A stretch of 64,000 nt of DNA from Hemiscyllium ocellatum (taxonomy: Eukaryota). How positions within the stretch are numbered: the stretch's first letter is position 1; each line of letters opens with the position of its first letter. This document shows positions 6,721 to 54,433 of this stretch, one piece after another. The notes under the pieces are model-generated. The model was not told the origin of the DNA. It saw only the letters and a program-made list of their open reading frames with translations, and ran no database searches. The DNA lies in NCBI RefSeq assembly GCF_020745735.1, contig NC_083402.1, positions 7,130,001 to 7,194,000 of the forward strand, given 5' to 3'. The position numbers were made by a program, and so were the translations under genes.

Positions 6721-7119
6721 TAACAGCAAACATTTCCCATTTGTTCTCTCCTCTTTTGTGAAACAAGCTGCTGTTCAAAATTAAAATTCAATTCTCAACT
6801 TTAAATCAGTTCCATAACTGAGGAACAATTAGAAAAATCAAAGAAAAATAGCGATAGTGTCAACAGTAATCACATTGCTTTTCATTTGGTTACATTGATG
6901 GTAGGAAAGTTAGAAAGTTCATCAATCAGGGGAGACAACCCTTGCAGTCAATATATAACCTGAACAGTGAGAGTGGCAGTCTGTCACTACATGTCTATCT
7001 AAGATTCCCATTGTATTGATGCTTCACATTCTCTCTGTAACAATATCTGAAATAGACATTGATTGGTCAGTTAGAGTACAGCCAGTACCTGGACTAGACG
7101 ACTGTTAAGCCTGAGCAGT

Positions 7120-7150
7120 CTAAAGAACGCTGGACAAATCTGGATCATTC
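7120..7150 (-). CDS. Candidate terminal coding exon (R)NDPDLSSVL*
   Basis: Strong acceptor gctctttgtatgtttttcag|; phase 2 fits the preceding exon. May be an alternative rather than the main last exon. Confidence 0.4.
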
Positions 7151-10100
7151 CTGAAAAACATACAAAGAGCATGAATATACCAAAGAAGCAAATGGCAAAA
7201 CCCAGCTCGCAGTAAAAAGCATCATGTGTTTTTTTGATAATTCAGGTCATGGGTGTCGCTGACTGATCGTGATTAACCTTGAGAAGGTGGTGGTGAAATG
7301 TCGCTGGGTCTAGGTTCTGGAATTCCCTCCCTAAGGGCATTGTGGCTCTACCTACAGCACACAGACTGCAAAAGTTCAAGAAGTTAACTTACCACCATCT
7401 TCTCAAGGGCAACTAGGGATGGGCAGTAAATGCTGGCCTAGCTAGAGATGCCCATGTTCCTCAGTGAATAAAAACGATGTTGAGATTTAGACACAAATCA
7501 CCCATCTCACCCTTGAATGATACATTACTGGAAACAGTCTTAATTTGCCACCCGTAGAATTCACAGTTTAGTCAGCAGCTGTAACACAGGGAGGGTTGCA
7601 GAAACTGTCAGGAATCACAGTGACAAACAAATGATTCCCAGGCAACTCTAGGTCACCTTTGTTCAGTTAGTCACAGGGCAGGGATGGAGGATGTTGGAGG
7701 TGAGAGGAAAATTCCTGCAGGGGCTTCTCATCTGCTGTAACTTTGGAGGATGTTACAGGGCATGGAAATCTTGGAAAGCTGAGAATGATCAGGAAAAGAC
7801 ATCCCCACCCAATGGAAATTCAGCTGCTTGGAGAACAAGGGAGAAAATGCTAAGTTTCACAAAACTTCAATTTTGCACTCAGCACTCACTGTAAGTGATA
7901 AAATTTTAATCTTTCCCTCCATAAAACGTTAATTAGAATTCAAACGATCGACTGTGCTGAAGATGAGCAACATTTTAATTTTGCACGAGGGTGAATTACA
8001 GGTTAATTTGGGAAAGGGCAATCGCAGGTGAATCTGGAGGTGGAGATTTTCAAACAACTGGAAATTGACAAATTCTGCCCAGTAACAATGTACTCTCATT
8101 TACCTCTCAGTCTGTTAAAACCAGTTTCCCACTCTGCGTGTTTGAGCAGTTTCCCAAAAGGCTAAACCACGTTAGTAACTCATAAGCAATGGGCTGCATT
8201 CTGTCTGTGAGCAAGAGCGTTCAATTCAACCCTGAACCAGAACATTTCTGCCACCATGCTTGTATGAATGATTAATTACCCTACCTTCTTGAAAATGTGG
8301 TCAGCTCAATTTGTCGTGAAAACCCTAAAGAGACAAAAGTGATTGTTAAATGTTTTGTTGTGTTATGAACAAATTTGCTATATTGTTTCCACAGTTGAAA
8401 GTGTTTCAAGCAAAACCATGATTTCTCGACCATCTACACAAGTTGCACCGTTTGCACAGATCTCTCGAATGTTTTGTGATACCTACAATCTTTATTCAAG
8501 TGTGTCTGACATAGCTCAGTCCAAGATCTGCAATTGACCAAGTCAGATTAGAGCGTTTTAAGGTGATCAGTGGGGACAAAGGATCAAATGCAGGAAGGTG
8601 TTTTGCCTCAAAGAGCAGAGACAAGGGTAAGAGAGAATATTATTATAATCCCAGTTATTACTGGACAAGTCACACCCAGACAGAACCTAACTTGCTAGAT
8701 AATATTTAGATTTTTGTTGGTTTATAATGGAATTGTCTCTCTGTGAAAGATAAGCACAATACTACTCATATTGCTTTAGTGTAAAACAGAAGTTTATTCA
8801 GAAAAAAAATGGGGAGGCATGGTGGTACTGTGGTTAGCACTGCTGCCTCACAGCACCAGAGACGCGGGTTCAATTCCCACCACAGGCAAATGTCTGTGTG
8901 AAGTTTACACATTCTCCCCGTGTCTGCGTGGATTTCCTCCCATAGTCTAAAGATGTGCAGGTCAGGTGAATTGGCCATTGTAAATTGTCTGTAGTATTAG
9001 CTGAAGGGGTAAATGTAGGGGAATGGGTCTGGGTGGATTGCTCTTCTTAGAGTTGGTGTGGAGTTGTTGGGCCAAAGGGCCTGTTTCTGTACGGTAAGTA
9101 ATCTAATAAACCAAGCTATCTACTTCTGATGCAAATTTAAAGATGAAAGCATCATCTGATTAATGCCAAAACACTGCTCTGTAAAACAATTAAAAGCAGT
9201 TTCATTCCACCCAAAACTCTTCACTGGTACAGTACCCAAAACACACACATCGTACCGAAAAACACCAACTGTGCAATACTCAAACCACAATTCCTGTTTC
9301 TATCACTTCAGTAGATTTAAGCCATTGCAATTTCAATTTATAGACTGAAGATGGACATAGTTCTTCCTGGAATTAGATACAGCTGAGTTTAAATGAACTC
9401 AGTTTTAAGTAAACACTTTGGTGTTTCATCGCAACGAAACAGTGGTCTGTTACTAACATTACCTCTTTACATTAAGGTAAAGTAGTTCAGTATATCCTTC
9501 CTTTCTCAGGAACAGGCCTGCTCAAACACAGAGGTAGAAAGTGAGGACTGCAGATGCTGGAGATCAGAGTTGAGAGGGTGGTGCTGGAAAAATACAGCAG
9601 GTCAGGCAGCATCTGAGGGCTGGAGAATCAATGTTTTGGGCATATGCCCTTCCTGATGAAGGGCTCATTCCTGAAACATCGATTCTCCTGCTCCTCAGAT
9701 GCTGCCGGACCTGCTGTACCTTTTCAGCACCACACTGCTCAAACACAGAATGAAACTAAAAAAAACCCTCTTCCTCCAAACTATTTTTGCAGCTTTAACA
9801 AAAACAAGTTCCAGAGATCTCTAACAAATCTTGAGGACCCATTATTTATCTTACTGAACCATAAAACAGTCTAAGTTAAACAATAATCCATCAATTCTAA
9901 AGCTAGGCCTCAAAATAAGCTGTTCTTAGAAGAAATCACCATGTCTACAGCAATACTAACAGGCCAGTTATTAACCTTAAACATGCAGAAAATCCACGAG
10001 ACAACTTTAAAAAAACCTCAAATTTAGAACAAATAATATTGAATACAGCAAGCTGATTGGGAGGATGAACTGTGAAGAGGATACAGAGATAATTCAGTGC

Positions 10101-13100
10101 AATTTGGACAAGTTCAGTCAAATGCGTTACAGTTGAAAAATAACGTATTAAGTATGAGGTTATCCACTTTGGTAGCAAAGTCAGGAACAAGACAATTTGC
10201 CAGAATTCCCTAGGTCCAGGAAAGGTCCCATTCCATTCAAAAATTATGAATGTACCTCCTTTATTCAAAAAGAGGAGGAGACAGAGAGCAGGAAATGATA
10301 GGACAGAGTGAAAATGTTAGAAGCTAATATTGAACACATTATAGCAGGTCACATCGCTGAAATAAAATAAAAGAGAAAAGAAAACATTAGGATAGACTGT
10401 GCATATATTTTTCGAAGGCCTTTAATAATGTAGAAAATAGGAACAGGAGTAGGCCATTCAGCCCTTTGTGTATGCTTTAATATTCAATATGATCATGATT
10501 GATCATCCATTTCATGACCTTGTTCCTGCTTTCTCCTCATACCATTTGATTAATTTAGCCTGAAGAACTGCACCCAACTCCTTCTTAAAAACACTCAATA
10601 TTTTGGCCTCATCTGCTTTCTGTGGCAGAGAATTCCATAGGCTCACCATGTTTTGGGTGAAGGAATTTCTCCTCATCTCAATCCTAAATGACATACCCCA
10701 TATTGTTAGACAGTGACCTTTGGTTCATGACTGCCCAGTTATTGGGAACATCTTTCCAGCATTTACCGTGTCTAGTCTTGTTAAAATTTCATACGTTTCC
10801 CTGAGATTACCCACCTTGTTCTTCTTAGCCCCAGTGCAGTCAATCCTGGAATCAGTTCAACAAACCTGCATTGCACTCCCCCGCTCGCCATAAAATCCTT
10901 CCTCAAATAAGGAGACCAAAGCCTCACACAATACTCCAGGTATGGCCTCACCAAGGCCCTATACAATTGCAGTAAAGCATTCCTGCTGCTGTACTCAAAT
11001 CCTGTCAGTCTGAAGCCAAAATGCAACTGACAGAGATAGGGAGGGAGAGAACGTGAAGATAAAGATAGCAATTTGAACTTCGCAAGATGACATCATAGAG
11101 CTCAGGAGTCTGAGGTCTACAACATTGCTGAGATATCCTGGATGTTCAATTTGATCAGCCAGTGCAAAGATAGATCAGGAGGGCAGCCCCAAAACAGATC
11201 AGTGCCTGAACATTGCACCCACTGCATAGGCCCAAAGAGGAGTCCATGTTACCATTCCACCCTCGATATAGCTCTGTTACTCAGACTATCTACTTTTGTG
11301 CAGCAAACTCTCCAAATCTATTTTAACAATAAAAACACATAAGGTACATAGAACATAGAACATAGAACAGTACAGCACGGAACAGGCCCTTCAGCCCACG
11401 ATGTTGTGCCGATCACTGATCCTCATGTATGCACCCCAAAATTTCTGTGACTATTTAATTTGAATTGAAGCCTCCTTTCTGTTTAATTGAGATTCTGTAC
11501 TGAGTGGGAATGAATGGAAAAGGTGAGGTCTGTTGGGATTTTGTTAAATGGGATTGAATGAAAAGACATTTTGGTGCATTGAGATTTGACAGTAATAGGG
11601 AGTAGAATGGGGATTGATCCAGAGTTCAATAGAATGGGTTTGAATGGCCTTGCTTGTGAAACAGCCTCAGTGTTCAATCACTCATGGGAAAGGTCAAACA
11701 GGAGACAGATACTAGAAAGTGGCTGATGCTATCAACCAGGCCAACTTCATCCACCCTCCACCACACACTATAATCAAAGCCAGTTTTTAATGAATGTATT
11801 GAAGAGGATAGTGAGGGAAATTTTATGTAGAGTCATCATTTGTTGCTGTTTCAAAAACAGAACCATATTGTTTTATTAACCTCATTCCCTACAGAACCCA
11901 CCTCCTGTCTTCCTGAAGGTGATGCAGATGATGACATTGATGATGATAAGGAGGATGATTAGCAATGGCATTGCCAGCGGATATACAGTGGTGGGCTCAG
12001 TCTTCTTCACTGTAAAACAGCAAGAATAGCATTGGTCACTAATATCTCAGTGTTGCTGCAGTGAAACCTGTAGCAGGGTTACAGAGCATGAGATTAACTG
12101 TACAATATGGACATTCTCTGATGGAGCAATTCAGTTAGTCTGTCTCCCCCGTCCTTCCCCATAATCCTCTAACTTGCTCCTTTCCAAATACTTACCCACT
12201 TGATTCTGAAAGCTCCCCTAATTGAATCTGTTTTCACCGCCCTTTCAGATAGTGCATTACAGATCAGAAAAATTCCTGAAGGAGGCAGCTGCTTAATTCT
12301 GTGACACAGTATATAAGGTTAGTCGATTTTCATTGATTCCTCTCTCATGCCCCTGTAATTATCTTTACTTAACTATCATACCATTACATCCAATTTTGCC
12401 TTCTCTATTTCAAACTGCAGACTGAACTCGACCATCATATGATCGCTGCCTCCTAAGTGTAACCTTACTTTAAGATCGCTTTATAAGGTTCTGGCCCATT
12501 TCATAGCACTAAGTCCAGAATAGCCTGCTCCCTTGTGGGCTCCGCCACAAGCTGTTCCAAAAAGCCATCCTGTAAGCATTCCATGAGTTCCCTTTCTTTG
12601 GATCCACCAGCAACATGAGAAACCATAAGTTATTGTATATATTGGGGGGAATTGCATAGTTAGGAAAAAGATTAATATTTCACAGAGTGAATATAAGAGG
12701 TTAAGTAGAGATTGAAAAAAAACACAGATCCTCAAAAATTTAATTGGAGTAAGGAACATTTTAGTGTATGAGACAAAAACTTTATAAATTTGATTGGGTA
12801 GACTGTTCAGGCAAAGAGATGTCTGATAAGTGGGAGGCTTTCAAATGTGTGATGAGAGTTTAGAATTACTATGTTCCTGTTAGATTAAATGGTAAAGATG
12901 GCAGGATTAGAGAACAATAGATGAATAAAGATACTGAGGTTCTAGTCAAGCACAAAAAAGAATCATACCTTAGATACAAACAACTGGGTTCAAATGAATC
13001 CCTTGCACAATATAAAGAGTGTAAGGGCATTCTGAAGATGGATATCGGTAAGTCAAAGATAATATATGAGATAGCCTTGACAGTTAGGGGTTAGGATAAT

Positions 13101-16100
13101 TCAGAGTTCTGTAAGTACATTAAAAGCAAGCGAGCAACTAGAGAGAGAGAGAGTAGTGCCGTTTAAAGATCAAAGAGGAATTGAGTTCCGGAGTCCTGAG
13201 GTCATGTTGCAGTTGTATAAGACTCTGGTGAGGCCTCATCTGGAGTATTGTGTGCAGTTTTGGTCGCCATACTATAGGAAGGATGTGGAAGCTTTAGAAC
13301 GAGTGCAGAGGAGGTTTACCAGGATGTTGCCTGGAATGGTAGGAAAATCTTATGAGGAAAGGCTGAGGCACTTGGGGCTGTTCTCATTGGAGAAGAGAAG
13401 GTTTAGGGGAGATCTGATAGAAGTGTATAAGATGATTAGGGGTTTAGATAGGGTAGATACTAAGAACCTTTTACCGCTAATGGAGTCAGGTGTTACTAGG
13501 GGACATAGCTTTAAATTAAGGGGTGGTAGGTATAGGACAGATGTTAGGGGTAGATTCTTCACACAGCGGGTTGTGAGTTCATGGAATGCCCTGCCCGTAT
13601 CAGTGGTGAACTCTCCTTCTTTATGGTCATTTAAGCGGGCATTGGATAGGCATTTGGAAGTTATTGGGCTAGTATAGGTTAGGTAGGATTCGGTCGGCGC
13701 AACATCGAGGGCCGAAGGGCCTGTACTGCGCTGTATCCTTCTATGTTCTATGTTCTATGTAGGTGTCTTTGTATTGAAACTCAGGAGATCAGAAAGATAC
13801 TAAATGAATATTTTACGTCAGGTTTTACACTGGGGAAAGAAATGGAAGCTAGGGAACTCAAAGAAATAAATATTGATATGTTTAACACATTTCACGTTAC
13901 AGAAGAGGAAGTGCTGGAGATCTTAGAAAACATAAAGGTAAATAAATGTGCAGGACCTGATCGATTGTATCCCAGGGCTTTGTGGGAAGAAAGGGAAGAA
14001 ATTACATATCCCCTTGCAGAAATATTTCTGTCACCTACAAATATGGATGAGGTGCCAAATGACTGGAGAGTAGCTAATGTTGTGTCTTAATTTAAGAAGG
14101 GATGAAAGGAGAAGCCATAGAGTTACAGGTCTATGAGTCTGAATTCAGTGGTGGGTAGGATGTTGGAAGTGATTCTGAAAGATTGGAATTATATACATTA
14201 AGAGAGGCAAAGAATGATTAGGGATAGTCAGCATCGTTTTGTCTGAGGGAAATTCTGTCTCACAAACTTAGATTGAGTTTTTTGAAGAAGTAAACAAGAA
14301 GATTCATGAGGACAGAGCGACAGAAGTTGTTTACTTAGACTTTATTAAAGCTGTTGGCAAGTTTCCACTTGGTAGACTAATTAGTAAAGTTAGATCACGT
14401 GAGATTCAGGATGAGCTTGGCAAATGGATAAAAAGTTGGCACAATGGCACAAGACAGAGAGTGATGGTGAAGGATTGTTTTTCAGGCTGGGGGTCTGTGA
14501 CTGGCAGTGTTACACAGGGATTGATACTGAGTTCATTTTTGTTTGACATTCATATAAATGACATGGATGAGAATAGAGAAATCATGGTGAGTAAATTTTG
14601 GATGACACCAATATTTTAAAATCAAATTTCAAATACAAAAGCAAAATACTGTAGAAGCTCAAGGTTTGTGCGAAGATTTGTAGCTCGGGTGCTCGTTGTT
14701 GTGGTTCTGTTCGCCGAGCTGGAAGTTTTTGTTGCAAACGTTTCGTCCCCTGGCTAGGAGACATCATCAGTGCCCTGGAGCCTCCTGCGAAGCGCTTCTT
14801 TGATGTTTCTTCCGGTATTTATAGTGGTCTGTCCTTGCCGCTTCCGGGTGTCAGTTTTAGCTGTCCGCTGTAGTGGTTGGTATATTGGGCCCAGGTCGAT
14901 GTGTTTGTTGATGGAGTGGCATTCATCCACAAACTCCATCAACAAACCCATCGACCTGGACCCAATATACCAACCACTACAGCGGACAGCTGAAACTGAC
15001 ACCCGGAAGCGGCAAGGACAGACCACTATAAATACCGGAAGAAACATCAAAGAAGCGCTTCGCAGGAGGCTCCAGAGCACTGATGATGTCGCCTAGCCAG
15101 GGGACGAAACGTTTGCAACAAAAACTTCCAGCTCGGCGAACAGAACCACAACAACTGTAGAAGCTGGAAATTTGGAACAAAAATCAAAATGCTGAAAATA
15201 TTCAGTTTGTCAAACAACACTTGTAGAGAGAAACATGGTTAATGTTTTAGTTCAATGATGTTTCACCTGAAAATCCAATTCTAAAAAGTTCACAGAATCT
15301 GTACCATTCTCTCCGTACAGCATCTACAGACAGAAGAATGTGTGAATGGCCTCTTACCAGTTATGACCTGCACCCGACTCTCTTTCTGGATCAGACACTG
15401 AATATCCAGTGGTAGTGATGTGTATTCCACCAGACACAGGTAAGTGTGATTGTCCCTCACACTCAGCTGGTTTATCCTGGTCGAGGCGTTTCCCTCCTCT
15501 GGGTTCCCGATGAGCTCGTACCGATTTCCACCGTGTCCAGTTGTCCAAGTTCCCTGTGATTGGGCTGTAAATGTAACGATGTGTTGGTAGGGCTCCTTCC
15601 TCATCCAGGTAACAGTGGTCAGGTTAAGGACCTCCATGGTCTCAAAGATACAGGGTAAGGTGACTAAATCTCCCTCTGTCCCACTCACCACTGAGACATT
15701 TCCCTGAGCAGCTGAGGAAAGGATAAACATCAGAATGGATGAGGACAGAAGCTCGAGATTCAATTTGTTACATTTCTTTCAACTTCACAATAAAATGGAC
15801 TATTAAAACCTCCACCCATATCACTCATGGGTTTATTCCAGATATTCTCCTGCTGTCACCCTGATCAAAATCTCTCATCTCTCAATTTTAGAAACTTGAT
15901 CACAAGATTGTTACAAATTAGGAAATCCATTCAACCCTCCCGAATTTATTCATGCAGAACCCTCCGCCCGTTGCTCAAAGTTAATTTTCTTTAAACAAGG
16001 TCAAGGATTTTACAACCTTCCCCCTCACTCTGTCCAGCAAACATGTTCAAAATATTGATCACACACTGTATGAAGGAGAACCCCCTGGTATCATTCCTAA

Positions 16101-19100
16101 TGTAACCATTCACCAGTTCAAACTTGAGTTTTGAAAATATGCACAGGTTAATTCAAACTTGTAGTCTGTATTAAATTTTGAGTAAAATACTTTGGGTGCA
16201 AGAGGAGTGATAGTTCAGCCATGTGGCTTTTCACGGTATAAGTTTAAAGATGAGCTGAGTGATGATCTGATTCCTCATTCCCTATTTCAAACAGGAAACT
16301 TCATTTTCAAATCAGTTCATCTTTTGTTCACAAGAGCAAGTATCCTCTCAGAATGTGCCCCGTCAAATCTCCTCAGCACCTTTTTTGTTTCAGTAATTTC
16401 TCCTCTAATATTTGTTATTCATTCATGGGTGTCTCTGGAAAGATTACATGCATTTATTGTCCATCTCGACTGCCAAGGAGCCGCTGCCTTCTTGAACTGC
16501 TGAGGTGAAGGGGTTACCCACAGGAGTTCTATGGATGGAGTTCCAGAATTTTGACTCAGCAACACTGAAGGAATGGCAATATGGTAAGAATGGAACCAAA
16601 CTACTCTGCATTGAGTGAGGCAGCAAAAACATTGAGAGCAGACATAGCCCTATCAATCCTGAAAAACCCTTCTCATTAACATCTTCCTCATTAACATCTG
16701 GAAGCTAGTGCAAGAAATGGAAGAGCTGTCTCATAGACTGGTCAACTAACAGTCCCACATAGGCAAACTCATGGAATCATAACTCAATTTGTCAGACACC
16801 ACTGTCATCGTTCCTGGATATATCCTGTCTCACTGGCAGGAACAGATCCAGCAGAGATTGAGGCACAGTGATATACATTTGGGAGGAGGTTGCCCTGGCA
16901 GTACCCAACATGAAGTTTCCAACTTAAAGTGAACATTGTTAGCCCATGGAACCACAATCTGTAACCTCATGATCCAGGTTAACTATCAATCCACCATTCC
17001 CATCAGGCTGGGAGATCAATAAAATGCATGTGTGAGTATGCTGTGAGCAACATAAGGTAAACTGAAAAATATGATGCCAACATTCTGAAACTACAGCACA
17101 CAATTGAGCCATTCCATAACCAATGGATCAGGTGGCTCTGCAGTCCTGGTTCATACAGTCCTGAATGATAGAGGACAATGGCTGCACCGGTTGGTTCAGA
17201 ACAGTTTTACAAGACTGGAGTCTCCCCAACAATGGGGAAAATTACCCGGGTATGTCCTGTGTACAAAAAGCAAAGTGATTCTGACCAGGCCATTTATTGC
17301 TCCATCAATCCACTCTCAATCATCAAGGAAGTGATGGAAAGTGTGAGTGACTGCCTTAACATCGAGCTACATTTGAGTAGGTGGAGCAAATGGGAGCTTG
17401 AGGAAAACTGAAGTCAACGGAAATTGGTGGTGGATCCTCTTTTGGTTTGAGTCATACCTGGGACATAGGAAGATGGTTGCAGTTTTTGGGGGTCAGCTCC
17501 AGGACACCACTGCAGGAGTTCCTCAGAGTAGTGTCCTTGGCCCAACCATCTCCTGCTGCGTCATTAATGACCTTCTCTTCACCATAAGGTCAGAAGTGGG
17601 GATGGATGCTCCCCTCCAAGACACTCACCATGCTGATTTGGGAATATTTCACCATTCCTTCAGTGTCACTGGGGCAAAGTCCTGAAAATCCTTTACCAAC
17701 CATATCATGAATGTCCCTGCTCCTGAGGGAATGCAGCAGTTCAAGAAGGCAGCTCACCATTCCCTTCTCCAGGGAAATTAGGGATGGCCAATACGGGCTG
17801 ACTGTGCATGTGGCACCAACATCCCCTCGAACAATTACAAGATAAATATAGTTCCAAGTCAGGATGATGTGCATCTGTTGCTGTTTTTCATGGTGGTTGT
17901 AGAGGTCACTAGTTTGGAAGGTGCTCGAGATGGAAATGTTGATGCTTAACTGCAGTGTATTTTGTAGTTATTTTCCTTCCCACAATGTTGCTTGGGTGGA
18001 AGTTCCAGGATTTTCAGCCAGCAACTGTGACAGAGCAGTGATATATTTTCAGATCAGGAAACCCACTCAAATATAAGGAATCCAAGTATGACCTTTGCAG
18101 AGCCATTAAGATAACCAAGGACCGATACCATCCAAACGAGAGATCCAGACAGACACCCAGTGACTATGGCAAGGATTGAATGACATCACAGGGTCTAAAA
18201 AGAGACAGTGCAAGATAGCAGACGATGATACATCCCTGCTGAAAATATGTTGCTGGAAAAGTGCAGCAGGTCAGGCAGCATCCAAAGAGCAGGACAATCG
18301 ACGTTTCGGGGCTTATGCCTAGATGACATATCCCTCCTAGATCGTTTCAACGCCTTCTCCGCTCACTTTGAGCAGAAATTTGGGAAAGGTAACACCTCTT
18401 CCGACAAGTCCTGATGAACCTATCCTAACAACCACTGCATCAGAGGTTAGATCAGTTTTCCTTCATGTGTGAATCCAAGAAAAGCAATGGGATCAGATGG
18501 AGTACCAGGTCGTGCACTCAGAGTGTGCACACATCAACTGGCAGAGGTCTTCTTGGACATCTTCAACCTCTCCCTGCAGCGGGCCACTTTCCCTGCCTGT
18601 TTCAAGAGGGCCAACATCATCTCTGTGCCTAAGAAGACTCATGCAGCATGTTTCAATGACTACTACCCAGTGGCCCTAACTTCGGTGGTCATGAAGTGCT
18701 TTGAAAGGCTGGTCATGGCATTAATCAACTCCAGCCTCCCTACTATTCTTGACACAGTCCAATTTGCCTATTGGACCAACAGATCCACAACAGATGCCAT
18801 ACTATTTGCTCTTCACTTCTCTATAGAACATCTTGACACCAAGAACAGCTACTTAAGAATCCTACTCATTGACTACAATTCAGCCTTCAATATTATTATC
18901 CCCTCGAGACTGATTACTAAACTTTGTGATCTCGGACTAAGCCCCACTCTCTGCAACTGGATCTTCAGTTTCCTGACCTACAGGCCACAATCAGTGAAGA
19001 TTGGGGACAATATTTCATTTTCACTAACACTCAACACTGGAGCCCCCCAGGTGTGCAGACTCAGCCCCCTACTGTACTTACTGTATAACCATGACTGCTT

Positions 19101-22100
19101 CGCCAAATGCCAGACTAATGTCATTTACAAGTTTGCTAATGACACCACCAAATCTCAGATGGTGACAAAACAGACTACAGATGGGAGGTGGAAGACCTGG
19201 AAAAATGGTGCACTGAGAACAATCTAGTCTCAATGCCAGCAAAACCAAGGAACTCATTATTGACTTTTGGTAGGATGTACTCATGCCCCCCTACACATTA
19301 ACAGCACAGAGGTGGAATGAGTGGAGGGTGTCAAGCTCCTGGGAGTGGTCATCCACAACAAGCTTTCTTGAACTCTTCATATGGATGCACTGGTTACAAA
19401 GGTCCAACAACATCTCTTCTTCCTCAGGCAGCTGAGGAAATTTGTCATGACAGCAAATACCCTTGCCAACTTTTATAAGTGTGCCATCGAGAGCATTCTG
19501 TCTGGATGTATCACTACCGGGTATGAGAACTGTACCATTCGAGATCGAAGACGGTTACAGAGACTAATGAATTCAGCCTGGACAAGCACAAAGGCCAACC
19601 TCCCATCTAGAGAATCCATCTACCAGGCCCGCTGTCAAGGAAAGGCCACCAACATTCTCAAAGATCCATCCACCCTGGCAATGCTTTTGGGGAGAAGGTA
19701 CAGAAGCCTGAACACACGCAGCAGACAGTTTCATAACAGTTTCTACCCTACTGTTGTTAGAATATGACTGGACTCACAAACTCTTAACATTTGCCTGTAC
19801 CTGTGTTTTTGTTTTAGCTGCTGTTTACCTATTATTTACTTATCTATGCTACTTTACTCTGTGATCTGCCCATATTGCTCACAAGAGAAAGCTTTTCACT
19901 GTGCTTTGGTACATGTGATAATAAATTCAATTCAATTCCTGCACTCTTCCAGACAAGTGGGGAGTATTTCAACACAGCCCTGATTGAAGAATAGGCATTT
20001 GTGTCAGAAGGTGTGTTAATTTAATGGATTCCTAGCTCACGATTTGCACTCCTGGTTTCATAAATGAGTAAGCCATTCAGAGGCAGTTGAGAGTGAATCA
20101 CATGATGGTGGGTATAGAGTCACATGTAGGTCAGACTAGGTAAGAACATGAGTGACCCAGATGGGTTTACATTAATGGTGATGGATACATGGTCATTACG
20201 AGATGACTTTTTAGTCCACAATTTTTTCAATTCAAATTTTACAATCCAGTTGGGATTGGAATCATTTGCAAGGACATTAACCACTGGAGAAGGCAGCTCC
20301 CCTAATGTTCTCCTCAGCCAATAGAGAGGGAGACAACCAATGTGAGCTGAAGGTTCCTTTATCCTGAGGCATGCTCATCCAATGAGGGCTCAGGAGGTAC
20401 AAGTTTCTCTTTACTTCAGTCAATGCTGAGGGAGAAGGGCTCTCACTGGTAGGAAATTAGGAGGTTGGATCTCGGTGATATTTCGTCTGTCCCCTATCCC
20501 AGAATGCTGAAGTTAGTTTAAACATAGTAAATGAATGATTGTGTGAGAGACTGGGAAGTTTCAGATGTAATGTTCTAAAAATTCCAGCCGATATCACTGC
20601 CTCCTGCCTCAGTCCAACTGAAAGAGCGCAAACCCAAGAGCTTCCAGGAGAAGTGGAGCTTGTCCCCATTGTGCTATAAGGGCAACAACACCATCCGAAC
20701 ATTGTTCCTCACCTATCACTTCCAGATCTGTCCCCAACAGCGTTTCGAAACTGCCAATATTGAATTCCACACAACACCGATAGAAGCCATCATCCTCCAG
20801 GCTCAGTCCCTCCATCATTAATGAGACATCGTTGTTGCTGAGGTTCCCCACAAATCTGAATCGATTCCCACCGTCCCGCTGTATCACATTCTCACACAGC
20901 TCACCCTGGGAATGGTCTGGACCAGGATACGTACAGTTAAAGATGACACCTGTGTCAGATTTAATCCATATGATGGAGCCAGTGAGTGGGAGATTAGTAT
21001 CAGGGTGGGTGAAGCTGCAGGGTAAGACAACGGTTCTTCCTTCCACAGCCCTCACTTCGTTCGCAACTGTCATTGACCAATCAATAGCAGAAACCTCTGT
21101 AGGGGGGAAAGAGAGGATATGAACACCAAAGAGTGAGGGCAAGTACTGAATCTGTTGTATAGTGCAAAAAGATATAACATCCTATATTCATGATTTATAC
21201 CCTGACCTGAGATAGTGTGGAATGAGCTACAACGTGCAGCACCACAGAGGATGTCAGGTGTTTTGTTAGCATCCTGAGGTGAGACTGTGAGTGTTTGTTG
21301 GTCTTGGTTGAAGAGAGCGTTTAGTGTCTGAGAGTTTTCTGAACACTCCATTGTTCCAGGAGATCCAGAGTTATCGCAAGACGAGGACTCTGGGCCCTCC
21401 CTGCAGAATCTTTTCTATTTCCCATCACTTTCTACTCTATTACAGAGCCAGCCTTCAGCAACCTGGCTCATTCATCAGTTGTAGGAGAGGGGTGGGGGAT
21501 GCAGTGAATGTACTGCAGAATGGAAATAGATGAAGAAATAAAGAAGAGCTGAAGTAAATTTGTCATAGTCCCAGAGAGCGACTGTCTCATTAGAGAGAGA
21601 TGACTAGTGATGATTTAACCTGGGTCCCTATGCTGCAGACAAGGGGCAAGGTTGAGAAGATGGGATCTTCATGGTCACCTCAGACAGTATGGGAATTAAA
21701 CCTGCATTGTTGGCGTCACTCCACATTGAGGAGAAAGTGAGGTCTGCAGATGCTGGAGATCAGAGCTGAAAATGTGTTGCTGGAAAAGCGCAGCAGGTCA
21801 GGCAGCATCCAAGGAATAGGAAATTCGAAGTTTCGGGTATAAGCCCTTTATCAGGATTCCTGATGAAGGGCTTATGCCCGAAACGTCAAATTTCCTGTTC
21901 CTTGGATGCTGCCTGACCTGCTGCGCTTTTCCAGCAACACATTTTCATCACTCCACATTGTGGAGCCAACTGTCCAGCCAACTGAGCTAACAGGCCTGAA
22001 AAGGCGAATCAAGTAGTTCTAGAAGGCAGCGTGAATATCATCAAGTGAGGGCCATAAGGGAGTGTGGCATGACTCGATGCAATTTACTTGTGAGTAAGGC

Positions 22101-28100: not shown

Positions 28101-28102
28101 GA

Positions 28103-28133
<31 letters not shown>

Positions 28134-34100: not shown

Positions 34101-37100
34101 CAAACATATTCAAAATATTGATCACACACTGTATGAAGGAGAACCCCCTGGTATCATTCCTAATGTAACCATTCACCAGTTCAAACTTGAGTTTTGAAAA
34201 TATGCACAGGTTAATTCAAACTTGTAGTCTGTATTAAATTTTGAGTAAAATACTTTGGGTGCAAGAGGAGTGATAGTTCAGCCATGTGGCTTTTCACGGT
34301 ATAAGTTTAAAGATGAGCTGAGTGATGATCTGATTCCTCATTCCCTATTTCAAACAGGAAACTTCATTTTCAAATCAGTTCATCTTTTGTTCACAAGAGC
34401 AAATATCCTCTCAGAATCTGCCCCGTCAAATCTCTTCAGAATTTTCTTTGTTTCAGTAATTTCTCTTCTAATATTTTTTATTCATTCATGGGTGTCTCTG
34501 GAAAATATTACATGCATTTATTGTCCATCTCGACTGCCAAGGAGCCGCTGCCTTCTTGAACTGCTGAGGTGAAGGGGTTACCTACAGGAGTTCTATGGAT
34601 GGAGTTCCAGGATTTTGACTCAGCAACACTGAAGGAATGGCAATATGGTAAGAATGGAACCAGACGACTTTGTTTTGAGTGAGGCAGCAAAAACAATGAG
34701 AGCAGACACAGCCCTGTTAATCCTGTAAAATCTTTCTCATTAACATCTGGAAGCTAGTGCAAGAAGTAGAAAAGCTGTCTCACAGACTGGTCAACTAACA
34801 GCGTCACATAGGCAAATGCATGGAATGATATCTCACAATGTCTCAGGTACCAGCGTTGCCATTGCTGGATATGCCCTGTCCCACTGGCAGGGACAGACCC
34901 AGCAGAGATCGAGGCGCTGTGATATACAGTGGGAAGAGGTTGCCCTGGTAGTACCTAACATGAAGTCCCCAACTTAAAGTGAACATTGTTAGCCCATGGA
35001 ACTACAATCTGTAACTTCACGATTCAGGTTAACTACCAATCCACCATTCCCATCAGGCTGGGAGATCAATGAAATGTATGTGTGAATATGCTGTGAGCAA
35101 CAATAGGCAAACTGAAAAATATGATGCCAACATTCTGAAACTACAACATCCAGGATAGCACATAATAGAGCCATCCCATAACCAATGGATCAGATGGCTC
35201 TGCAGTACTGGTTCATACAGTCCTGAATGATAGAGGACAATTGCTGCACCAGTTGGTTCAGTAGAGTTTTATAACACTACGATCTCCCCAACAATGGGGA
35301 AAATTGCCCAGGTATGTCTTGTATACAAAAAGCAAAGTGATTCTGACCAGGCAATTTACAGCTCCATCAATTCACTCTCGATCATCAGGGGAGTGATGGA
35401 ATGTGAGTGACTGCCCTTAACATCAAGGCTACATTTGAATAGGTGGAGCAAATGGGAGCTTGAGGAAAACTGAAGCCAATGGGAATTGGGGGAGAATTCT
35501 CTTTTGGTCTAAGTTTATACCTGGCACATAGGAAGATTGTTGCAGTTGTTGGAGGTCAGCTCCAGGACACCGCTGCAGGAGTTCCTCAGGGTAGTGTCCT
35601 AGGCCCAACCATCTCCTGCTGTATCATCAGTCCTCCCTCCACCATACGATCAGAAGTGGAGATGGATGTTTCCTGATGAACATGGGATACAGGAGAACAT
35701 CACTATATACAAGCTTCCCTCCAAGACACTCACCATCCTGATTTGGAAATATTTCACCATTCCTTCAGTTTTTTTGGGGCAAAGTCCTGGAATTCATTTA
35801 CCAATTACATCATGACTATCCCTGCAGCTGAGGGAATTCAGAAGTTCAAGAAGGCAGCTCACCATTCCCTTCTCCAGGGCAATTAGGGGTGGCCAATAAA
35901 CACTGACTGTGCAAGTAACACCCACATCCCCTTGAACAATTCCAAGATAAATAGTGCCAAGTCAGGATGATGTGCATCTGCTGCTGTTTTTCATGGTGTT
36001 CGTAGAGATCACTAGTTTGGGGGGTGCTCGAGATGGAAGAGTTGGCGCTTAACTGCAGTGTATTTTGTAGTTATTTTTCTTCCCACAATGGTGTTTGGGT
36101 GGAAGTTCCAGGATTTTCAGCCAGCATCCGTGACAGGACAGCGATATATATTCCTGTACTCTTCCAGAAACAATGGGAGTATTCCACCACGCTTCTGACT
36201 GATCAATAGGCTTTAATGTCAGAAGATGTGTTAATTTACAGGATTCCTAGCTTGCGACCTGCTCTTGGAGCCACAATTTCATTTGCACTCATGGGTTCAC
36301 TCCTTGTCCACAAATGAATGAGCCATTCAGAGGTAGTTAAGAATGAATCACATGACTATGGGTACAGAGATGTGTGTATGTCAGACAAGGTAAGGATAGC
36401 AGATTTTCCTCCCTAAAGGACATGAGTGACCCAGATGGTTTTACTTTTACAGTGATGGATCCATAGTCATTATGAGACGACTTTTTAGTCTGAGATTTTT
36501 TTCAATTCAAATTTTACAATCCAGCTGGGATTGGAATCATTCACAAGGACATTAACCTCTGGAGAAGGCAGCTTCCCTAATTTTCTCCTCAGCTCATAGA
36601 GAGGGAAATAGCAACTGTGAGGTTCTCAGCCAATGTGAGCTGAAGGTTCCTTCACTCTGAGGCATGCTCATCCAATGAGGGCTCAGGAGGTACGAGTTTC
36701 TCTGTACTCCACCCAATAAGGGGGCAGGGCTTTCACTGGTCGGAATCTAGGAGCTTGGATCTTGAGGATATTTAGTCTGTTCCCTATCCCAGAATGCTGA
36801 AGTTAGTTGAAACATAATGAATGATTGTGTGAGAGACTGTGGGAAGTTTCAGATGGAATATTCTACAAACTCCAGTTAATATCACTGCCTCCTGCCTCAG
36901 TCCAACTGAAAGAGCCCAGGACAAGGAGCAAAACCAAGAGCTCCCAGAAGAGGTGAAGCCTGTCCCCATTGTGCTATACGGGCAACAACACCATCCGAAC
37001 ATTGTTCCTCACCTATCACTTCCAGATCTGTCCCCAACAGCGTTTCGAAACTGCCAATATTGAGTTCCACACAACACCGATAGAAACCATCATTCTCCCG

Positions 37101-40100
37101 GCTCAGTCCCTCCATCATTAATGAGACATCGTTGTTGCTGAGATTCCCCACGAATCTGAATCGATTCCCACCATCCCGCTGTCTCACATTCTCACACAGC
37201 TCACCCTGGGAATGGTCTGGACCAGGATATGTACAATTAAAGATAACACCTGTGTCAGATTTAATCCATATGACGGAGCCGGTGAGTGTGAGGTGAGTGT
37301 CAGGGTGGGTGAAGCTGCAAGGTAAGACAGCGGAGCCTCCTTCCTCAGCCCTCACTTCATCCGCGATTGTCATTGACCAACCATTAAGAGAAAACACTGA
37401 GGGGAGAGAGAGAGAGAGAGGATATGAACACAGCACAAACACCAAACGGTGAAGTAAAACACTGAATCTGTTATATAGTGCGCAAAGATAACATTTCTGA
37501 CTTCTAAACTGACCTGAGACAGTGCGGATTGAGCTACAGTGTAGAGCACACAGAGGACGTCAGTACTTTGTAAACATCTTGAGGTGAGACTGTGGGTGTT
37601 TGTTGCTGTTTGTTGAAGAGAGGGTTTGGTGCCTGAGAGTTTTCTGAACTCTCCATTGTTCCAGGAGACCCAGAGTGATCTGAAGAGCAGGACTCAGGGC
37701 CCTCCCTGCAGAACCTTTTCTATTTCCCATCACCTTCTACTCTATTACCTAGCCAGCCTTCTGCAAACTCACTCATTTATTACTCGTAGCAGAGGGATGG
37801 GATATGCGGTGGAGGTACAGCAGAGGGAAATGCACAGAGAAATAAATAGGGGGAATTGGAGTAAAAAGGTAAATTCGTCATAGTCCCGGAGAACTGCTGT
37901 CTCTTAGAGAGAGATGACTGGTGGTGATATAACCTGAGGGTCATTATGCCTCAGACAAGGGGCACAGATGAGAAGGTGGGACCTTCATGGTCCCCTCAGA
38001 CAGTATGGGAATTAACCCTGCATTGTTGGCATCACTCTACACTGCAGACCAACTGTCCAGCCAACTGAGCTTACTGAGCCCAGGAAGACAATCCAAGTAA
38101 TACCAGAAGGCAGTGTGAATATTGTCAAGTGAGGGCATAAGGCAGTGTGGCATAGCTGGATGGTATTTACTTGTGAAGGCAGATGAGCTGAAGCTGTTGA
38201 TTAATGCATGGGGATGTGATATTATTGCTATCACAGAAATATAGTTGAGGGTGAGGCAGGATTGACAGCACAATGTTCCAGGGTATACAACCATGAGATG
38301 AGACCTGTAGGGGTAGGGGGAATGTAGAATAGGTAGTGGTGTTGCAACGTTTTTCAAAGAGTCAATTGCTGTAATAAGATGGATGATATCTTAGAATGTT
38401 CCTCAAGTGAGGCCACATGGTACAATGTAAAAACAAACCACCCTCTGTCTCCTCTCATCAAATCAATTTTGTATCCAATTGGCATTCTCTCCCTGACTCC
38501 CATGTGATCTAACTTTAATAATTAGTCCACCTGTGTAATCTTGACAACGGCTTTACTAAAATCCATGTAAACATCGTCTCCCCCTCTGCACTCATTGGTC
38601 TTTTTGGTTACTTCCTCAAAATCCTTTATTTAGCTTGTGGGACATGATTTCCCATGCATAAAGCCATGCTAATCAGTCCTTGCTTGTCCAAATATCTCTC
38701 AGAATTTCCCTCTAACAACTTTTCCACTACTGATGTCAGACTCAAAGGTTTGTAGTTACTAGGCATCTCCTCATAGTCTTTCTTAAATAAAGACACAAGA
38801 TTCGCCACCCTCCATTCCTCTGGCACTTCACTGCTGTTTATGGATGATACAAATATCTCTGTTCAGCGCCGCACAATTTCTTCCCTAACTTCCCACAATA
38901 TTCTGGGATACATTTGATCAGGTTCCAGGGATTTATCCACTATTATGTTTTAAGACCTTGACCATTTCCTCTTCTGTAACATGTTCTGTTTTCAAGACAT
39001 CAATATTTATTTCCCTGAGTCTCCTGGCCTTCATTTCTTTCTCCACAGTAAAAATTGGTGCAAAGTATTTGTTTACTATATCTGTCCCATCTCCTGTTGT
39101 TCTACATATAGCCAACCTTGTTGATCTTGAAGAGACCCTATTCTCTCCCTAGTTGCTCTCTGGCTCTTAATGACCTTATAGACTGTCTTTGGATTATCCT
39201 TAACCTTACTTGCCAAGGTTGCCTCATGTCCCCTTTTTTTCTCTCCTGATTTCCATCTTAAAAATGCTGCTGTATCCCTTATACTCTTCAAGAGATTTAC
39301 TTGATCGCACTTGTCAATATCTAATATATGACTCCTTCTTATTCTTGACAAAAGGCTCAACGTCTTTATTCATCAATTGTTTTCTCCTCTTACCAGCTTT
39401 ATCCTTCACTCTTGTGGTTCTGTTCGCCGAGCTGGGAATTTGTGTTGCAGACGTTTCATCCCCTGTCTAGGTGACATCCTCAGTGCTTGGGAGCCTCCTG
39501 TGATTTTTCCTCTGGCATTTGTATTGGTTTGAATCTGCCGCTTCCAGTTGTCAGTTCCAGCTGTCCGTTGCAGTGGTCGGTATATTGGGTCCAGGTCGAT
39601 GTGCTTATTGTTTGAATCTGTGGATGAGTGCCATGCCTCTAGGAATTCCCTGGCTGTTCCCTGTTTGGCTTGTCCTATAATAGTAGTGTTGTCCCAGTCG
39701 AATTCATGTTGCTTGTCATCCGCGTGTGTGGCTACTAAGGATAGCCATGAAACAACACGACCAGTATCCTTAGTAGCCACACACGCAGATGACAAGCAAC
39801 ATGAATTTGACTGGGACAACACTACTATTATAGGACAAGCCAAACAGAGAACAGCCAGGGAATTCCTAGAGACATGGCACTCATCCACAGATTGAATCAA
39901 TAAGCACATCGACCTGGACCCAATATACCGACCACTACAATGGACAGCTGGAACTGACAACTGGAAGTGGCAGATTCAAACCACTACCAATGCCGGAGGA
40001 AAGATCACAGAACCACTTCACAGGAGGCTCCCAAACACTGAGACTGTCACCTAGACAGGGGACGAAACATCTGCAACACAAATTCCCAGCTCTGCGAACA

Positions 40101-46100: not shown

Positions 46101-46917
46101 AGAACTATCGTGAGATATTTGTTGTCTGACCCAGACATGATGGTCCAAACAGCCTCTTTTTATGCTGTAAGTGTCCAAAAATCCATGAATTTACAATGAA
46201 ACCTTGAAGGAATGAACCTTCATACTAGGAATAGTTAATTATTGGTTGGTTAACAGTAATTAATACTCATCATACTGATAAAAGAGCATTGAAGATGAAA
46301 TAGATAAGATTTAGCATTCTACGCTGCATTTAACTTATATCTTCCAGAGAAATGCTGCAACTTCACATCATTCAATAAATCTCAATGATCAGCCAACTAT
46401 AGGGTTTGGCGACATCCAGTAGCAAATTTTGCCTCTCTGTTTTCTGTATTTGCAGTATTATTTGTAAGAAATAGAGACAAATGTCTTTAGATTCATTATT
46501 ATTACTTCTCAGTCAGTTTTGCCCCAGCATATCCTTGAACCTTGGTTGTGTCTGCAGTATTCTGCATCTCCCCTCACTCTGTGGAAAGTCACATGAGTTT
46601 CTGTGGGCTCTGTCCCGTTTGAGCTCTGATGGGAATGTTTTGGCAGATTCAGGTAAGTGATGTTATCCTGCTTTATTATTTTGTAAAGCAAATGATTTCT
46701 CCCTGACAAAGAAACCACCGTGAAGGAAAAGGCACATCATGCTAAGCAGTAACAGGTTTGGGAATTAAATACCAGATAGCAGATGAAATATCCAGGAGGA
46801 GGCAATTACATGATTGAAAAAATGGATTTGAAAGGTCCGTATTAGAAAGCACTTACTGCGACCCTGCACCGAGACTGAGACGAGCACTCCAGAAAGATAA
46901 ACATAGAGAGACTTCAT
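7120..46917 (-). CDS. Assembled gene model: five-V-set-domain Siglec-15-like type I membrane receptor (L-A1-B1-A2-A3-B2-TM-cyt), 699 aa if the 7120-7150 exon is terminal
   Basis: Nine exons with canonical AG/GT sites and compatible phases sum to 2100 nt with no internal stop. Connectivity is inferred: only one convincing leader and one TM exon were seen. Confidence 0.65.
8285..8324 (-). CDS. Cytoplasmic exon (G)FSRQIELTTFSR(ag)
   Basis: Strong acceptor cacttttgtctctttag|, donor aag|gtaggg, 40 nt, phase 1 to 2, open in the TM frame. Confidence 0.6.
8811..9106 (+). mobile_element. HE1-like V-SINE (tRNA-derived head)
   Basis: tggttagcac A-box, ggttcaattcc B-box, V-core ttctccccgtgtctgcgtgg. 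Confidence 0.85.
9533..9734 (+). mobile_element. Penelope-derived palindromic mini-element with degenerate hammerhead core; 15-bp TSD
   Basis: ctgctcaaacacaga at 9518-9532 and 9735-9749; internal inverted arms; ctgatgaagggc..gaaac at 9653. Confidence 0.8.
10020..11020. mobile_element. CR1 fragments in both orientations
   Basis: ORF 10781-11071(-) LLQLYRALVRPYLEYCV; 10512-10694(-) MRRNSFTQ. Confidence 0.8.
11902..12009 (-). CDS. Transmembrane exon (V)KKTEPTTVYPLAMPLLIILLIIINVIICITFRKTG
   Basis: Acceptor ttcttgctgttttacag|, donor gag|gtgggt, 108 nt, phase 1-1. Hydrophobic run followed by an RK stop-transfer. Too short to appear in the ORF track. Confidence 0.88.
12760..14610 (+). mobile_element. 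Old CR1 LINE interrupted by a younger CR1
   Basis: ORF 13743-14090 KCAGPDRLYPRAL..WRVANVV; RT motifs downstream with stops. Confidence 0.8.
13165..13760 (+). mobile_element. Young 5'-truncated CR1 with intact ORF2 C-terminus and (TTCTATG)n tail
   Basis: 173-aa ORF LYKTLVRPHLEYCVQFWSP..FFTQRVV..WN.LP; tail ttctatgttctatgttctatg. Confidence 0.92.
14660..15153. mobile_element. Penelope-like (GIY-YIG) inverted 3' fragments forming a hairpin; 12-bp TSD; hammerhead cores on both strands
   Basis: actgtagaagct at 14648-14659 and 15154-15165; empty site in the duplicate at ~32908; WHSSTNSINKPIDLDP; CTGATGA..GAAACGT at 15080-15112. Confidence 0.9.
15358..15711 (-). CDS. Ig V-set exon B2 (near-identical paralog of B1)
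   Basis: Acceptor cctttcctcag|, donor ctg|gtaaga, 354 nt, phase 1-1. Confidence 0.92.
18060..19938 (+). mobile_element. L2-clade LINE, 5'-truncated, degraded RT
   Basis: ORF 18469-19227 KAMGSDG..YYPVALTS..LIDYNSAFN..KFAND; ends aataaattcaattcaattc; absent from the duplicate at ~36145. Confidence 0.9.
20713..21096 (-). CDS. Ig V-set exon A3, Siglec-15-like, Arg>Cys (FYRCCVEF)
   Basis: Acceptor tttcccccctacag|, donor ag|gtgagg, 384 nt, phase 1-1, open frame. Confidence 0.93.
21729..21947 (+). mobile_element. Penelope-derived palindromic mini-element, intact hammerhead core; 13-bp TSD
   Basis: tcactccacattg at 21716-21728 and 21948-21960; 90-bp arms 21767-21947 centred on 21857; empty site in the duplicate at ~38030. 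Confidence 0.9.
22480..27200. mobile_element. Nest of CR1 fragments in both orientations, with a half hairpin element at ~25070-25155
   Basis: ORFs 24315-24611(-) VVMGDFNFP, 25657-26085(-) QHGFLRGRSCL..DFSKVFDKIPH..GVPQG. Confidence 0.8.
27705..28088 (-). CDS. Ig V-set exon A2, Siglec-15-like, essential Arg retained (SYLCRVEL)
   Basis: Acceptor (ct)n..cacttcacag|, donor aag|gtgagg, 384 nt, phase 1-1. Arg codon CGT at 27763-27765. Confidence 0.93.
28101..28172. repeat. (GA)n microsatellite forming the (CT)n polypyrimidine tract of exon A2
   Basis: Read directly, immediately 5' of the A2 acceptor on the minus strand. Confidence 0.9.
31532..31908. repeat. Two diverged ~190-bp direct repeats of Penelope-like sequence
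   Basis: gggtcatttttgtgtacaga..gccatgcattgccat.tgcatagag occurs twice in tandem. Confidence 0.7.
31914..32115 (-). mobile_element. Penelope-derived palindromic mini-element (reverse orientation); 12-bp TSD
   Basis: catagagtgtga at 31902-31913 and 32116-32127; inverted arms ctggaaaagcgcagcagg / cctgctgcgcttttccag. Confidence 0.85.
33116..33469 (-). CDS. Ig V-set exon B1 (divergent V domain, 3 Cys)
   Basis: Acceptor cctttcctcag|, donor ctg|gtaaga, 354 nt, phase 1-1. VTLPC, TW, RYELIGNPEEGNAS, D..TYLC motifs. Confidence 0.92.
33728..34048 (-). mobile_element. Young HE1-like V-SINE with (TAAGTC)n tail
   Basis: CpG-rich; attct flanks at 33723-33727 and 34049-34053; absent from the duplicate at ~15990. 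Confidence 0.92.
37013..37396 (-). CDS. Ig V-set exon A1, Siglec-15-like, essential Arg replaced by Cys (FYRCCVEL)
   Basis: Acceptor ctctcccctcag|, donor ag|gtgagg, 384 nt, phase 1-1. WSMT..VLPCSFTHP..FNC..ELC..RFRFVGN..NDVSL..YRCCVE matches the Siglec-15 V-set pattern WSM..VLPCTFTHP..FRC..ELC..RFRLLGN..NDLSL..YFCRVEF (from memory). Confidence 0.93.
38430..40500 (-). mobile_element. Degraded CR1 interrupted by a Penelope hairpin
   Basis: ORF 38626-38826(-) WRVANLVSLFKK..YKPLSLTSVV. Confidence 0.8.
39410..40143. mobile_element. Penelope-like GIY-YIG inverted fragments (hairpin, loop 39744-39764); ~13-bp TSD
   Basis: ctttatccttcac 39397-39409 vs ctttacccttcac 40144-40156; SLVATHADDKQHEFDWDNTTII on both strands. 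Confidence 0.88.
40770..43300. mobile_element. Highly degraded CR1 fragments
   Basis: CR1 3' tails and endonuclease-like remnants (ORF 41205-41558). Confidence 0.6.
43972..45165. mobile_element. Penelope-like inverted 3' fragments, ~1.17-kb hairpin (loop 44555-44574)
   Basis: QHFNS..RRLEEERLIFRLGTLQPQGINVDFNSF on both strands; hammerhead cores at ~44040-44066(-) and 45044(+). Confidence 0.9.
46857..46917 (-). CDS. Signal-peptide exon MKSLYVYLSGVLVSVSVQGR(a)
   Basis: ATG with A at -3 (ataATGa), hydrophobic core ending VQG, strong donor gca|gtaagt in phase 1, matching the phase-1 V exons. Confidence 0.7.
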
Positions 46918-47590: not shown

Positions 47591-47634
47591 CGTGCCTCCT
47601 TTATACACATATTTTATATTTTTTATATTTTATA

Positions 47635-54380: not shown

Positions 54381-54433
54381 TGTGAATTTTAACTCCTAAT
54401 ATGTGTTCACAACAGCTGCATAGATTACATTTG
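54381..54433 (-). CDS. Last coding exon with ITIM, (T)NVIYAAVVNTY* (stop 54396-54398), of the upstream neighbour
   Basis: Acceptor ttctgtatctttctag|; VIYAAV fits the ITIM consensus (I/V/L/S)xYxx(L/V); donor aca|gtaagt 15 nt after the stop. Confidence 0.68.

Follow-up and report, generated by a model that had tools for sequence, protein, structure and literature searches.

The stretch of DNA analysed here, hereafter the window, comprises 64 kb of the genome of the shark Hemiscyllium ocellatum, is free of N runs and harbours the exons of a membrane receptor: a signal peptide, five immunoglobulin (Ig) V-set domains, a transmembrane (TM) helix and a short cytoplasmic tail. All the receptor features lie on the minus strand, and the V exons are designated D1 to D5 following the direction of transcription (Table 1). 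The arrangement points to a single minus-strand gene, extending from 46917 to 7120, which probably delivers all five V exons in one mRNA. Such a five-V mRNA is proposed because the anatomy of the gene, the existence of complete multi-V paralogs and the conservation of the exons all converge on it.

Pfam identifies a V-set domain in five open reading frames (ORFs), with E values from 5e-10 to 1e-13, and tblastn with either domain type as query retrieves exactly five V-exon copies in the 64 kb. All five are in phase 1-1 and are bordered by a polypyrimidine tract with an AG acceptor on one side and by a GTGAGG or GTAAGA donor on the other. Exon length follows domain type: the Siglec-15-like V exons measure 384 nt and those of the second V type 354 nt. 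When the nine exons are joined at the consensus splice sites, a coding sequence of 2100 nt results that is translated into 699 amino acids without any internal stop and that contains 13 N-glycosylation sequons.

Hidden Markov models (HMMs) of the leader, built from shark homologs, and of the TM segment, built from the family in an uncharged and a lysine-containing version, were used to scan all six reading frames. The leader HMM returns a single match in the window, coincident with exon 1 (E 1.9e-9; the next best scores 0.5), and the leader encoded there is 62–74% identical to those of shark homologs. The uncharged-TM HMM likewise finds only exon 7 (E 4e-21), and the Lys-type TM HMM has zero matches in the window. 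An additional leader or TM segment between the V exons was considered and ruled out, as the scans disclosed nothing else above noise. No C2 or I-set exon was detected in the window by tblastn with 260 fetched relatives, a set of queries that includes true Siglec-15 orthologs endowed with a C2 domain and one Mobula protein of V-V-C2 type.

The original prediction, made from the sequence of this stretch, had listed five intact V exons, one leader, one TM exon and compatible phases, and had noticed no C2 exon between D5 (its B2) and the TM exon. The V exons, the leader and the missing C2 domain are all borne out. The TM exon is also single, but position 7120, at which the gene had been made to end, is where the stop codon finishes and does not belong to a TM exon. 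The phases are indeed compatible; however, this is a common property of Ig-domain exons in general and is not evidence for one gene.

According to the nine-exon translation, the cytoplasmic tail consists of approximately 27 residues and is devoid of immunoreceptor tyrosine-based inhibitory or activation motifs (ITIM, ITAM), the stop codon at 7122-7120 being located ahead of any ITIM. The tail exons match P0012, P0188 and P0193, the last of which is XP_060698451.1. ITIM exons 3' of the stop were sought by a motif scan of the window and none was found, the sole match being that of the upstream neighbour. The DNA past the stop (2947-4586 and 6370-6700) is 71–82% identical to 61122-63595, a region upstream of the neighbour's ITIM exons; because of this paralogy, any ITIM exons of the five-V gene would fall outside the window, to its left, and their use would still require a bypass of the stop in exon 9. 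An alternative frame of the last exon, at 7098-7151 on the minus strand, reads GMIQICPAFFRLLRLNSR and shares 67% identity with the tail of Stegostoma isoform P0208. Relatives thus seem to read the exon in either of two frames, according to whether the 40-nt exon is present.

Table 1. Features of the five-V locus, with coordinates in the window
Feature	Coordinates	Strand	Evidence and remarks
Exon 1, start codon and signal peptide MKSLYVYLSGVLVSVSVQGR	46857..46917	-	Sole leader-HMM match; phase-1 GTAAGT donor
Exon 2, D1, Siglec-15-like V-set, CCVE (Cys replaces the sialic-acid Arg)	37013..37396 (384 nt)	-	Pfam V-set; splice sites
Exon 3, D2, second V type (generic IgV) at the position of C2	33116..33469 (354 nt)	-	Pfam V-set, E 1.2e-13
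Exon 4, D3, Siglec-15-like V-set, F-strand Arg kept (CRVE)	27705..28088	-	Pfam, E 1.1e-13; intact 384-nt ORF
Exon 5, D4, Siglec-15-like V-set, Arg to Cys (CCVE), paralog of D1	20713..21096 (384 nt)	-	Best PDB match Siglec-15 7zoz
Exon 6, D5, second V type, paralog of D2	15358..15711 (354 nt)	-	Pfam V-set, E 6e-13
Exon 7, stalk and TM helix without charged residue, then RKTGG	11902..12009	-	Sole TM-HMM match; splice sites in the DNA
Exon 8, 40-nt cytoplasmic exon FSRQIELTTFSR	8285..8324	-	TAG acceptor, GTAGGG donor; residues 329-342 of XP_060698451.1
Exon 9, end of tail NDPDLSSVL and TAG stop	7120..7150	-	In paralogs the exon continues toward ITIM exons
Cryptic GT..AG intron of 139 nt within D3	27909..28047	-	Used in XP_060703194.1; frameshift to TIPRVSCVRM-stop
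Duplicated block, copy 1 (D4 and D5)	15154..22504	.	Self-blastn, 80-89% identical to copy 2
Duplicated block, copy 2 (D1 and D2)	32912..38573	.	Exons 91-96% identical in nucleotides to copy 1, above introns

RefSeq places two loci here, with products XP_060703194.1 (177 aa) and XP_060698451.1 (351 aa), both of which match the window at 100%. The first begins at a Met within D1, of which it retains the C-terminal 35 residues (100% identical), and continues with the whole of D2 as its residues 37-153, again at 100% identity. It then takes the first 13 residues of D3, jumps the cryptic intron of 139 nt and ends out of frame; its coding span, 9243 bp, agrees exactly with the window. The gene of the second product starts 33 bases further on, at a Met inside D3, and encodes the last 46 residues of D3, with D4, D5, the TM segment and the tail behind them. 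Both models lack a signal peptide, and the point at which they part lies within the intact D3 exon. As RefSeq calls no gene in the 10 kb upstream, the leader lies outside every RefSeq model. Taken jointly, the two models cover the junctions D1-D2, D2-D3, D3-D4, D4-D5 and D5-TM in genomic order, and the split is read as an annotation artefact.

The ectodomain is wholly V-set and is built of two V types. For the first, comprising D1, D3 and D4 and represented by D4, the best PDB match found by phmmer is Siglec-15 (7zoz, E 2.4e-14). The alignment preserves W44, the C64-C142 disulfide and the extra C'-C'' pair C95-C104, which the structure paper names as a unique feature of Siglec-15 (PMC10264397). 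The same study identifies R143 as the sialic acid-binding arginine, whose replacement in R143A abolishes binding of sialic acid (PMC10264397). The F-strand position equivalent to R143 is occupied by Arg in D3 only and by Cys in D1 and D4, and Cys is also found there in the bamboo-shark orthologs of D1 and D4.

D2 and D5 make up the second type and are approximately 30% identical to the Siglec-15-like one. Sequence matches of the D5 type are spread over TIM-2, pIgR and Siglec-15, each with an E value between 1e-6 and 1e-8. The AlphaFold model of D5 has a predicted local distance difference test (pLDDT) score of 90.6 and is matched by many IgV folds, the top score among the 50 matches listed (TM-score 0.80) being to the V domain of Siglec-15; a language-model search carried out beside this structure search returned V-set clusters only. 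The D4-D5 pair was modelled with a predicted template-modelling score (pTM) of 0.87 and resembles tandem V-V proteins in the PDB, such as JAML, with a TM-score of about 0.4. These matches are generic V-V only, and a specific two-domain relative of D4-D5 is not supported. The Siglec-15 likeness that had been claimed for all five domains consequently applies to D1, D3 and D4, whereas D2 and D5 are of a generic V type.

Unusual cysteines are present in both types. D1 and D4 contain an extra unpaired Cys beside the F-strand Cys (CCVE; 37055-37075 and 20752-20775, minus strand), and D2 and D5 contain one in the last strand (DIQC; 33140-33160 and 15382-15402), where most paralogs have Tyr. The extra residues of D1/D4 and of D2/D5 may form interdomain or intermolecular disulfides.

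An orthologous array is available in the bamboo shark Chiloscyllium punctatum (BEZZ01000707.1, loci L001 and L002), whose introns are 93–94% identical to the window. The order of its exons, B3c-A2c-B2c-B1c, corresponds to D1-D2-D3-D4; the four have the same length as their H. ocellatum counterparts, are open and retain the AG and GT sites, and the locus stops short of the expected D5 ortholog. The D3 and D4 orthologs (the latter B1c) are each 94.5% identical to their counterparts, and the ratio of non-synonymous to synonymous divergence (dN/dS) is 0.29 for the D2 ortholog and 0.26 for that of D3. When the four exons are pooled, differences occur at about 24 of 337 synonymous sites and at 34 of 1156 non-synonymous ones, equivalent to a dN/dS of approximately 0.41 (Fisher p = 0.001). 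Apart from a 2.7-kb gap, no leader or TM match is detected in 48 kb of Chiloscyllium sequence. The Chiloscyllium proteins P0188, P0186 and P0183 were rejected as orthologs, as they map off the orthologous locus and are paralogs from elsewhere in the cluster.

Upstream of the D1 ortholog, Chiloscyllium carries three additional V exons, Bx, Ax and By, bringing the total to at least seven. Of the Chiloscyllium flanks, it is the one preceding Bx, not the one preceding B3c, that is orthologous to the DNA 5' of D1 in the window, and a Bx-type domain also leads a four-V model in Stegostoma; for these reasons Hemiscyllium has most likely lost the three-exon segment by unequal crossing-over. In the domain tree D1 and D4 group with their two Chiloscyllium orthologs, which makes the duplication that generated D1-D2 and D4-D5 older than the split of the genera. 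The D3 lineage also has well-supported orthologs, reaching as far as Stegostoma.

An exhaustive HMMER and profile search recovered relatives in sharks, skates, rays and electric rays, and more distant ones in lungfish. No paper describing an elasmobranch V-V family of Siglec-15-like receptors was found in the literature search. The composition of this family was surveyed in 109 close members, all of them predicted models. One Siglec-15-like V followed by one V of the second type is by far the prevalent ectodomain (86/109); four V domains in alternating order are present in seven of the 109 and six V in a single one. ITIM tails are found in 47/109 and a Lys in the TM segment in 23/109, while 10/109 have a TM with neither ITIM nor Lys and 29/109 are models without TM. 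The F-strand Arg is kept in 77 of the 93 Siglec-like domains that could be scored. On sequence grounds the members are predicted to be either inhibitory, through the ITIM tail, or activating, through a Lys-bearing TM of the PLGxK type; this motif is common to the true Siglec-15 of mammals and teleosts.

The five-V gene is 66–94% identical to members of the family and shares with them the leader, the 384-nt Siglec-15-like V exon, the second V exon of 354 nt and phase 1-1; the TM and tail exons of the family are homologous to its own. The signalling motif of the family, an ITIM tail or a Lys-type TM, is absent from it. Multi-V relatives are encoded on the same chromosome of H. ocellatum. XP_060690354.1 and XP_060690349.1, isoforms of 654 and 657 aa that differ by 3 aa in length, are complete models in which a single leader and a single TM flank four V domains and ITIMs are present; XP_060703220.1 has six V domains in 871 aa. 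Pfam detects V-set stretches only in the family models, and multi-V members without internal leader or TM constitute an established predicted architecture. A relative in Narcine is annotated with 14 isoforms. In a more distant relative, Mobula birostris P0027 (874 aa), a V-V-C2-TM series occurs twice in one model, as fused tandem genes, which is evidence that rays possess a V-V-C2 form and that gene fusion is among the errors automatic modelling can make in this family.

A V-domain phylogeny, which the original prediction had suggested as a check, places the elasmobranch domains in one clade, separate from bony-vertebrate Siglec-15. The family, which is arrayed in tandem and has a second V in place of the C2 domain, most likely descended from Siglec-15 or is its sister. 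The proposal of a lineage-specific immune receptor family is supported. The related idea that a shark receptor multiplied its V domains into an all-V ectodomain requires amendment: the ectodomain is all-V, but the two-V design is family-wide. The all-V design is not an invention of this gene, in which the customary two-V unit has only been multiplied.

The reading of the locus as one five-V gene is favoured by the open frame across nine exons, by the sole leader and sole TM in 40 kb together with the lack of a Lys-type TM, by the junctions of the RefSeq models, by the paralogs in which one leader and one TM enclose four or six V domains, and by the exon order in Chiloscyllium. Several observations weigh against it. 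Searches of the Logan run assemblies, RNA-seq included, yielded no matching proteins in either of the length classes searched, and RefSeq annotates two genes. The cryptic intron in D3, if it were the main splice, would shift the frame and truncate the protein. Exons in phase 1-1 can be skipped at will, and a junction between two Siglec-like domains (BBA order), as at D3-D4, is rare, being encountered in one of the 109 family proteins. As dS between the two sharks is only about 0.07, the intact exons provide moderate and not strong evidence of constraint. Finally, an N run of 2.7 kb in Chiloscyllium (L002 18470-21157, equal to L001 731-3418) cuts the By exon and is the only spot in the orthologous V-exon array with room for an unseen leader or TM exon.

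The chief rival explanation, which is rather unlikely, also envisages one transcription unit, in which the V exons serve as cassettes: two-V and four-V products would predominate, the five-V product would be scarce or missing, and the array would be a menu of ectodomains, for instance D1-D2, or D3 or D4 with D5. Uniform phases mean that any subset of V exons is in frame, the two-V ectodomain is the norm of the family, relatives have many isoforms, as in Narcine, and RefSeq did not build one full-length model here. However, the same species has complete models in which one leader and one TM accompany four or six V domains, the two RefSeq fragments join adjacent exons in genomic order with none skipped, and the splice sites are strong at every exon. 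A further, improbable reading is that at least one V exon, most likely D3 or the D1-D2 copy, is the relic of a recent duplication and is no longer spliced. The introns of the two blocks, at 80–89% identity, do indicate a fairly recent duplication, a dead exon could still seem intact at such low dS, and the first RefSeq model breaks D3 by the cryptic intron; yet the five exons and the four sequenced orthologs maintain length, frame and AG/GT sites, non-synonymous change is approximately 2.4-fold below synonymous, and the D3 lineage is well supported and extends to Stegostoma. It is highly improbable that two separate genes, D1-D2-D3 and D3-D4-D5-TM, exist as in the NCBI annotation with its two loci and products of 177 and 351 aa: both products begin at a Met within a V exon and are without a signal peptide, the first is out of frame at its end and lacks a TM, the division splits a single intact exon, and neither a leader nor a TM exon lies between D1 and D5.

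If a single five-V gene is accepted, its product would be a type I membrane glycoprotein of 699 aa in which the signal peptide is followed by D1, D2, D3, D4, D5, an uncharged TM and a tail without ITIM or ITAM. The ectodomain would have originated by intragenic duplication of a two-exon V-V block plus an extra Siglec-15-like exon, D3, and the number of blocks would shift between sister genera through unequal crossing-over. Because R143A abolishes binding in Siglec-15, D3 would be the sole domain fit for the canonical salt bridge with sialic acid; it may be the one that binds sialic acid, with the rest of the V domains holding it off the membrane. Lectin activity would be absent from D1 and D4, which could be spacers or bind something else. 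Since the TM is uncharged and the tail stops before any ITIM, the encoded isoform would not signal by either of the two usual routes of the family, and the product may instead be a non-signalling binding partner, an adhesion partner, a decoy or a co-receptor.

The DNA around the gene contains a further family member and mobile elements. The last coding exon of the upstream neighbour, at 54395-54428 on the minus strand, ends in NVIYAAVVNTY-stop, the C-terminal ITIM of the family, and a head-to-tail gene array is therefore confirmed; the coding end of this neighbour is about 7.5 kb upstream of the leader of the five-V gene. An ORF on the plus strand (47572-48234) with a GIY-YIG-like motif, VVYKIPCKDCTKHYIGQTGRQL, recurs several times at 80–92% identity, with copies in inverted and direct orientation at 39407-40111 and 14661-15155, and looks like a fragment of a Penelope-type retroelement. 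Reverse-transcriptase-like ORFs, fragments of long interspersed nuclear elements, are located at 13156-13677, 18469-19227, 25657-26410 and 58553-59296, and a large part of the long introns and of the intergenic DNA consists of such fragments.

Siglec-15 is a vertebrate receptor composed of a V and a C2 domain, with a TM lysine that serves pairing with DAP12/DAP10 and with signalling through DAP12, and it is considered one of the few Siglecs that vertebrates in general have kept as a single gene of V + C2 organization. D1, D3 and D4 share its V-domain features, D3 and most family members keep the equivalent of R143, and the activating paralogs possess the PLGxK motif in the TM. In contrast to Siglec-15, the five-V gene has five domains instead of two, no C2 and a TM without Lys, and two of its three Siglec-like domains have Cys for Arg; furthermore, the elasmobranch family is multigene with ITIM members, whereas Siglec-15 is a single conserved gene. 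Within its own V-V family, whose members bear RefSeq names such as Siglec-15, pIgR-like, JAML-like and uncharacterized, the gene shares leader, V exons, TM, tail and chromosome, but it is distinguished by the odd number and the order of its domains, S-T-S-S-T (S, Siglec-15-like; T, second type), by a tail cut by a stop before the ITIM, and by the lack of a complete RefSeq model.

Ectodomains of V-type only are also known from the mammalian pIgR, which has five V-like domains, and from JAML, which has two in tandem. D1 of pIgR is among the best sequence matches of D5, with an E value of about 7e-7, on a par with TIM-2 and Siglec-15, and JAML is the best fold match of D4-D5. The likeness to pIgR and JAML appears to be that of the generic V fold only, and neither has the paired ITIM and Lys-TM members that the elasmobranch family contains.

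In elasmobranchs, Siglec-15 V domains head a large and fast-evolving family in which C2 has been dropped for a second V and the V-V unit has been multiplied. The five-V gene offers a concrete example, corrects a RefSeq mis-annotation and shows gain and loss of modules between two close sharks. A broader scenario, advanced here tentatively and somewhat short of an even chance, is that in cartilaginous fish Siglec-15 became a paired-receptor system on the megabase scale, with Lys-TM activating, ITIM inhibitory and tail-less forms, and with strings of V-V modules (2, 4, 5, 6, 7 or more) reshuffled by unequal crossing-over even between sister genera. If this is true, the system would be a germline-diversifying sensor of glycans or pathogens, comparable in its role to KIR/LILR or NITR, and lectin-competent (Arg) and lectin-dead (Cys, His) domains would be mixed within one chain. 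These findings raise the questions of whether shark paired receptors recognize sialic acid, whether lectin-dead Siglec domains act as spacers and whether the Lys-TM forms operate via a shark DAP12.

The closest organizational counterparts are KIR/LILR, the teleost NITR and the skate MDIR; the last two are described in PMC3031540, which cites MDIR sequences such as ABC86796.1. No protein named MDIR is included among 101 close relatives, a comparison made by name. All these systems resemble the elasmobranch family in forming a tandem cluster of charged-TM activating and ITIM inhibitory receptors with similar ectodomains, and in their variable number of domains and rapid turnover. They differ from it in the types of domain employed, as in the elasmobranch receptors each module is headed by a Siglec-15-like lectin V.

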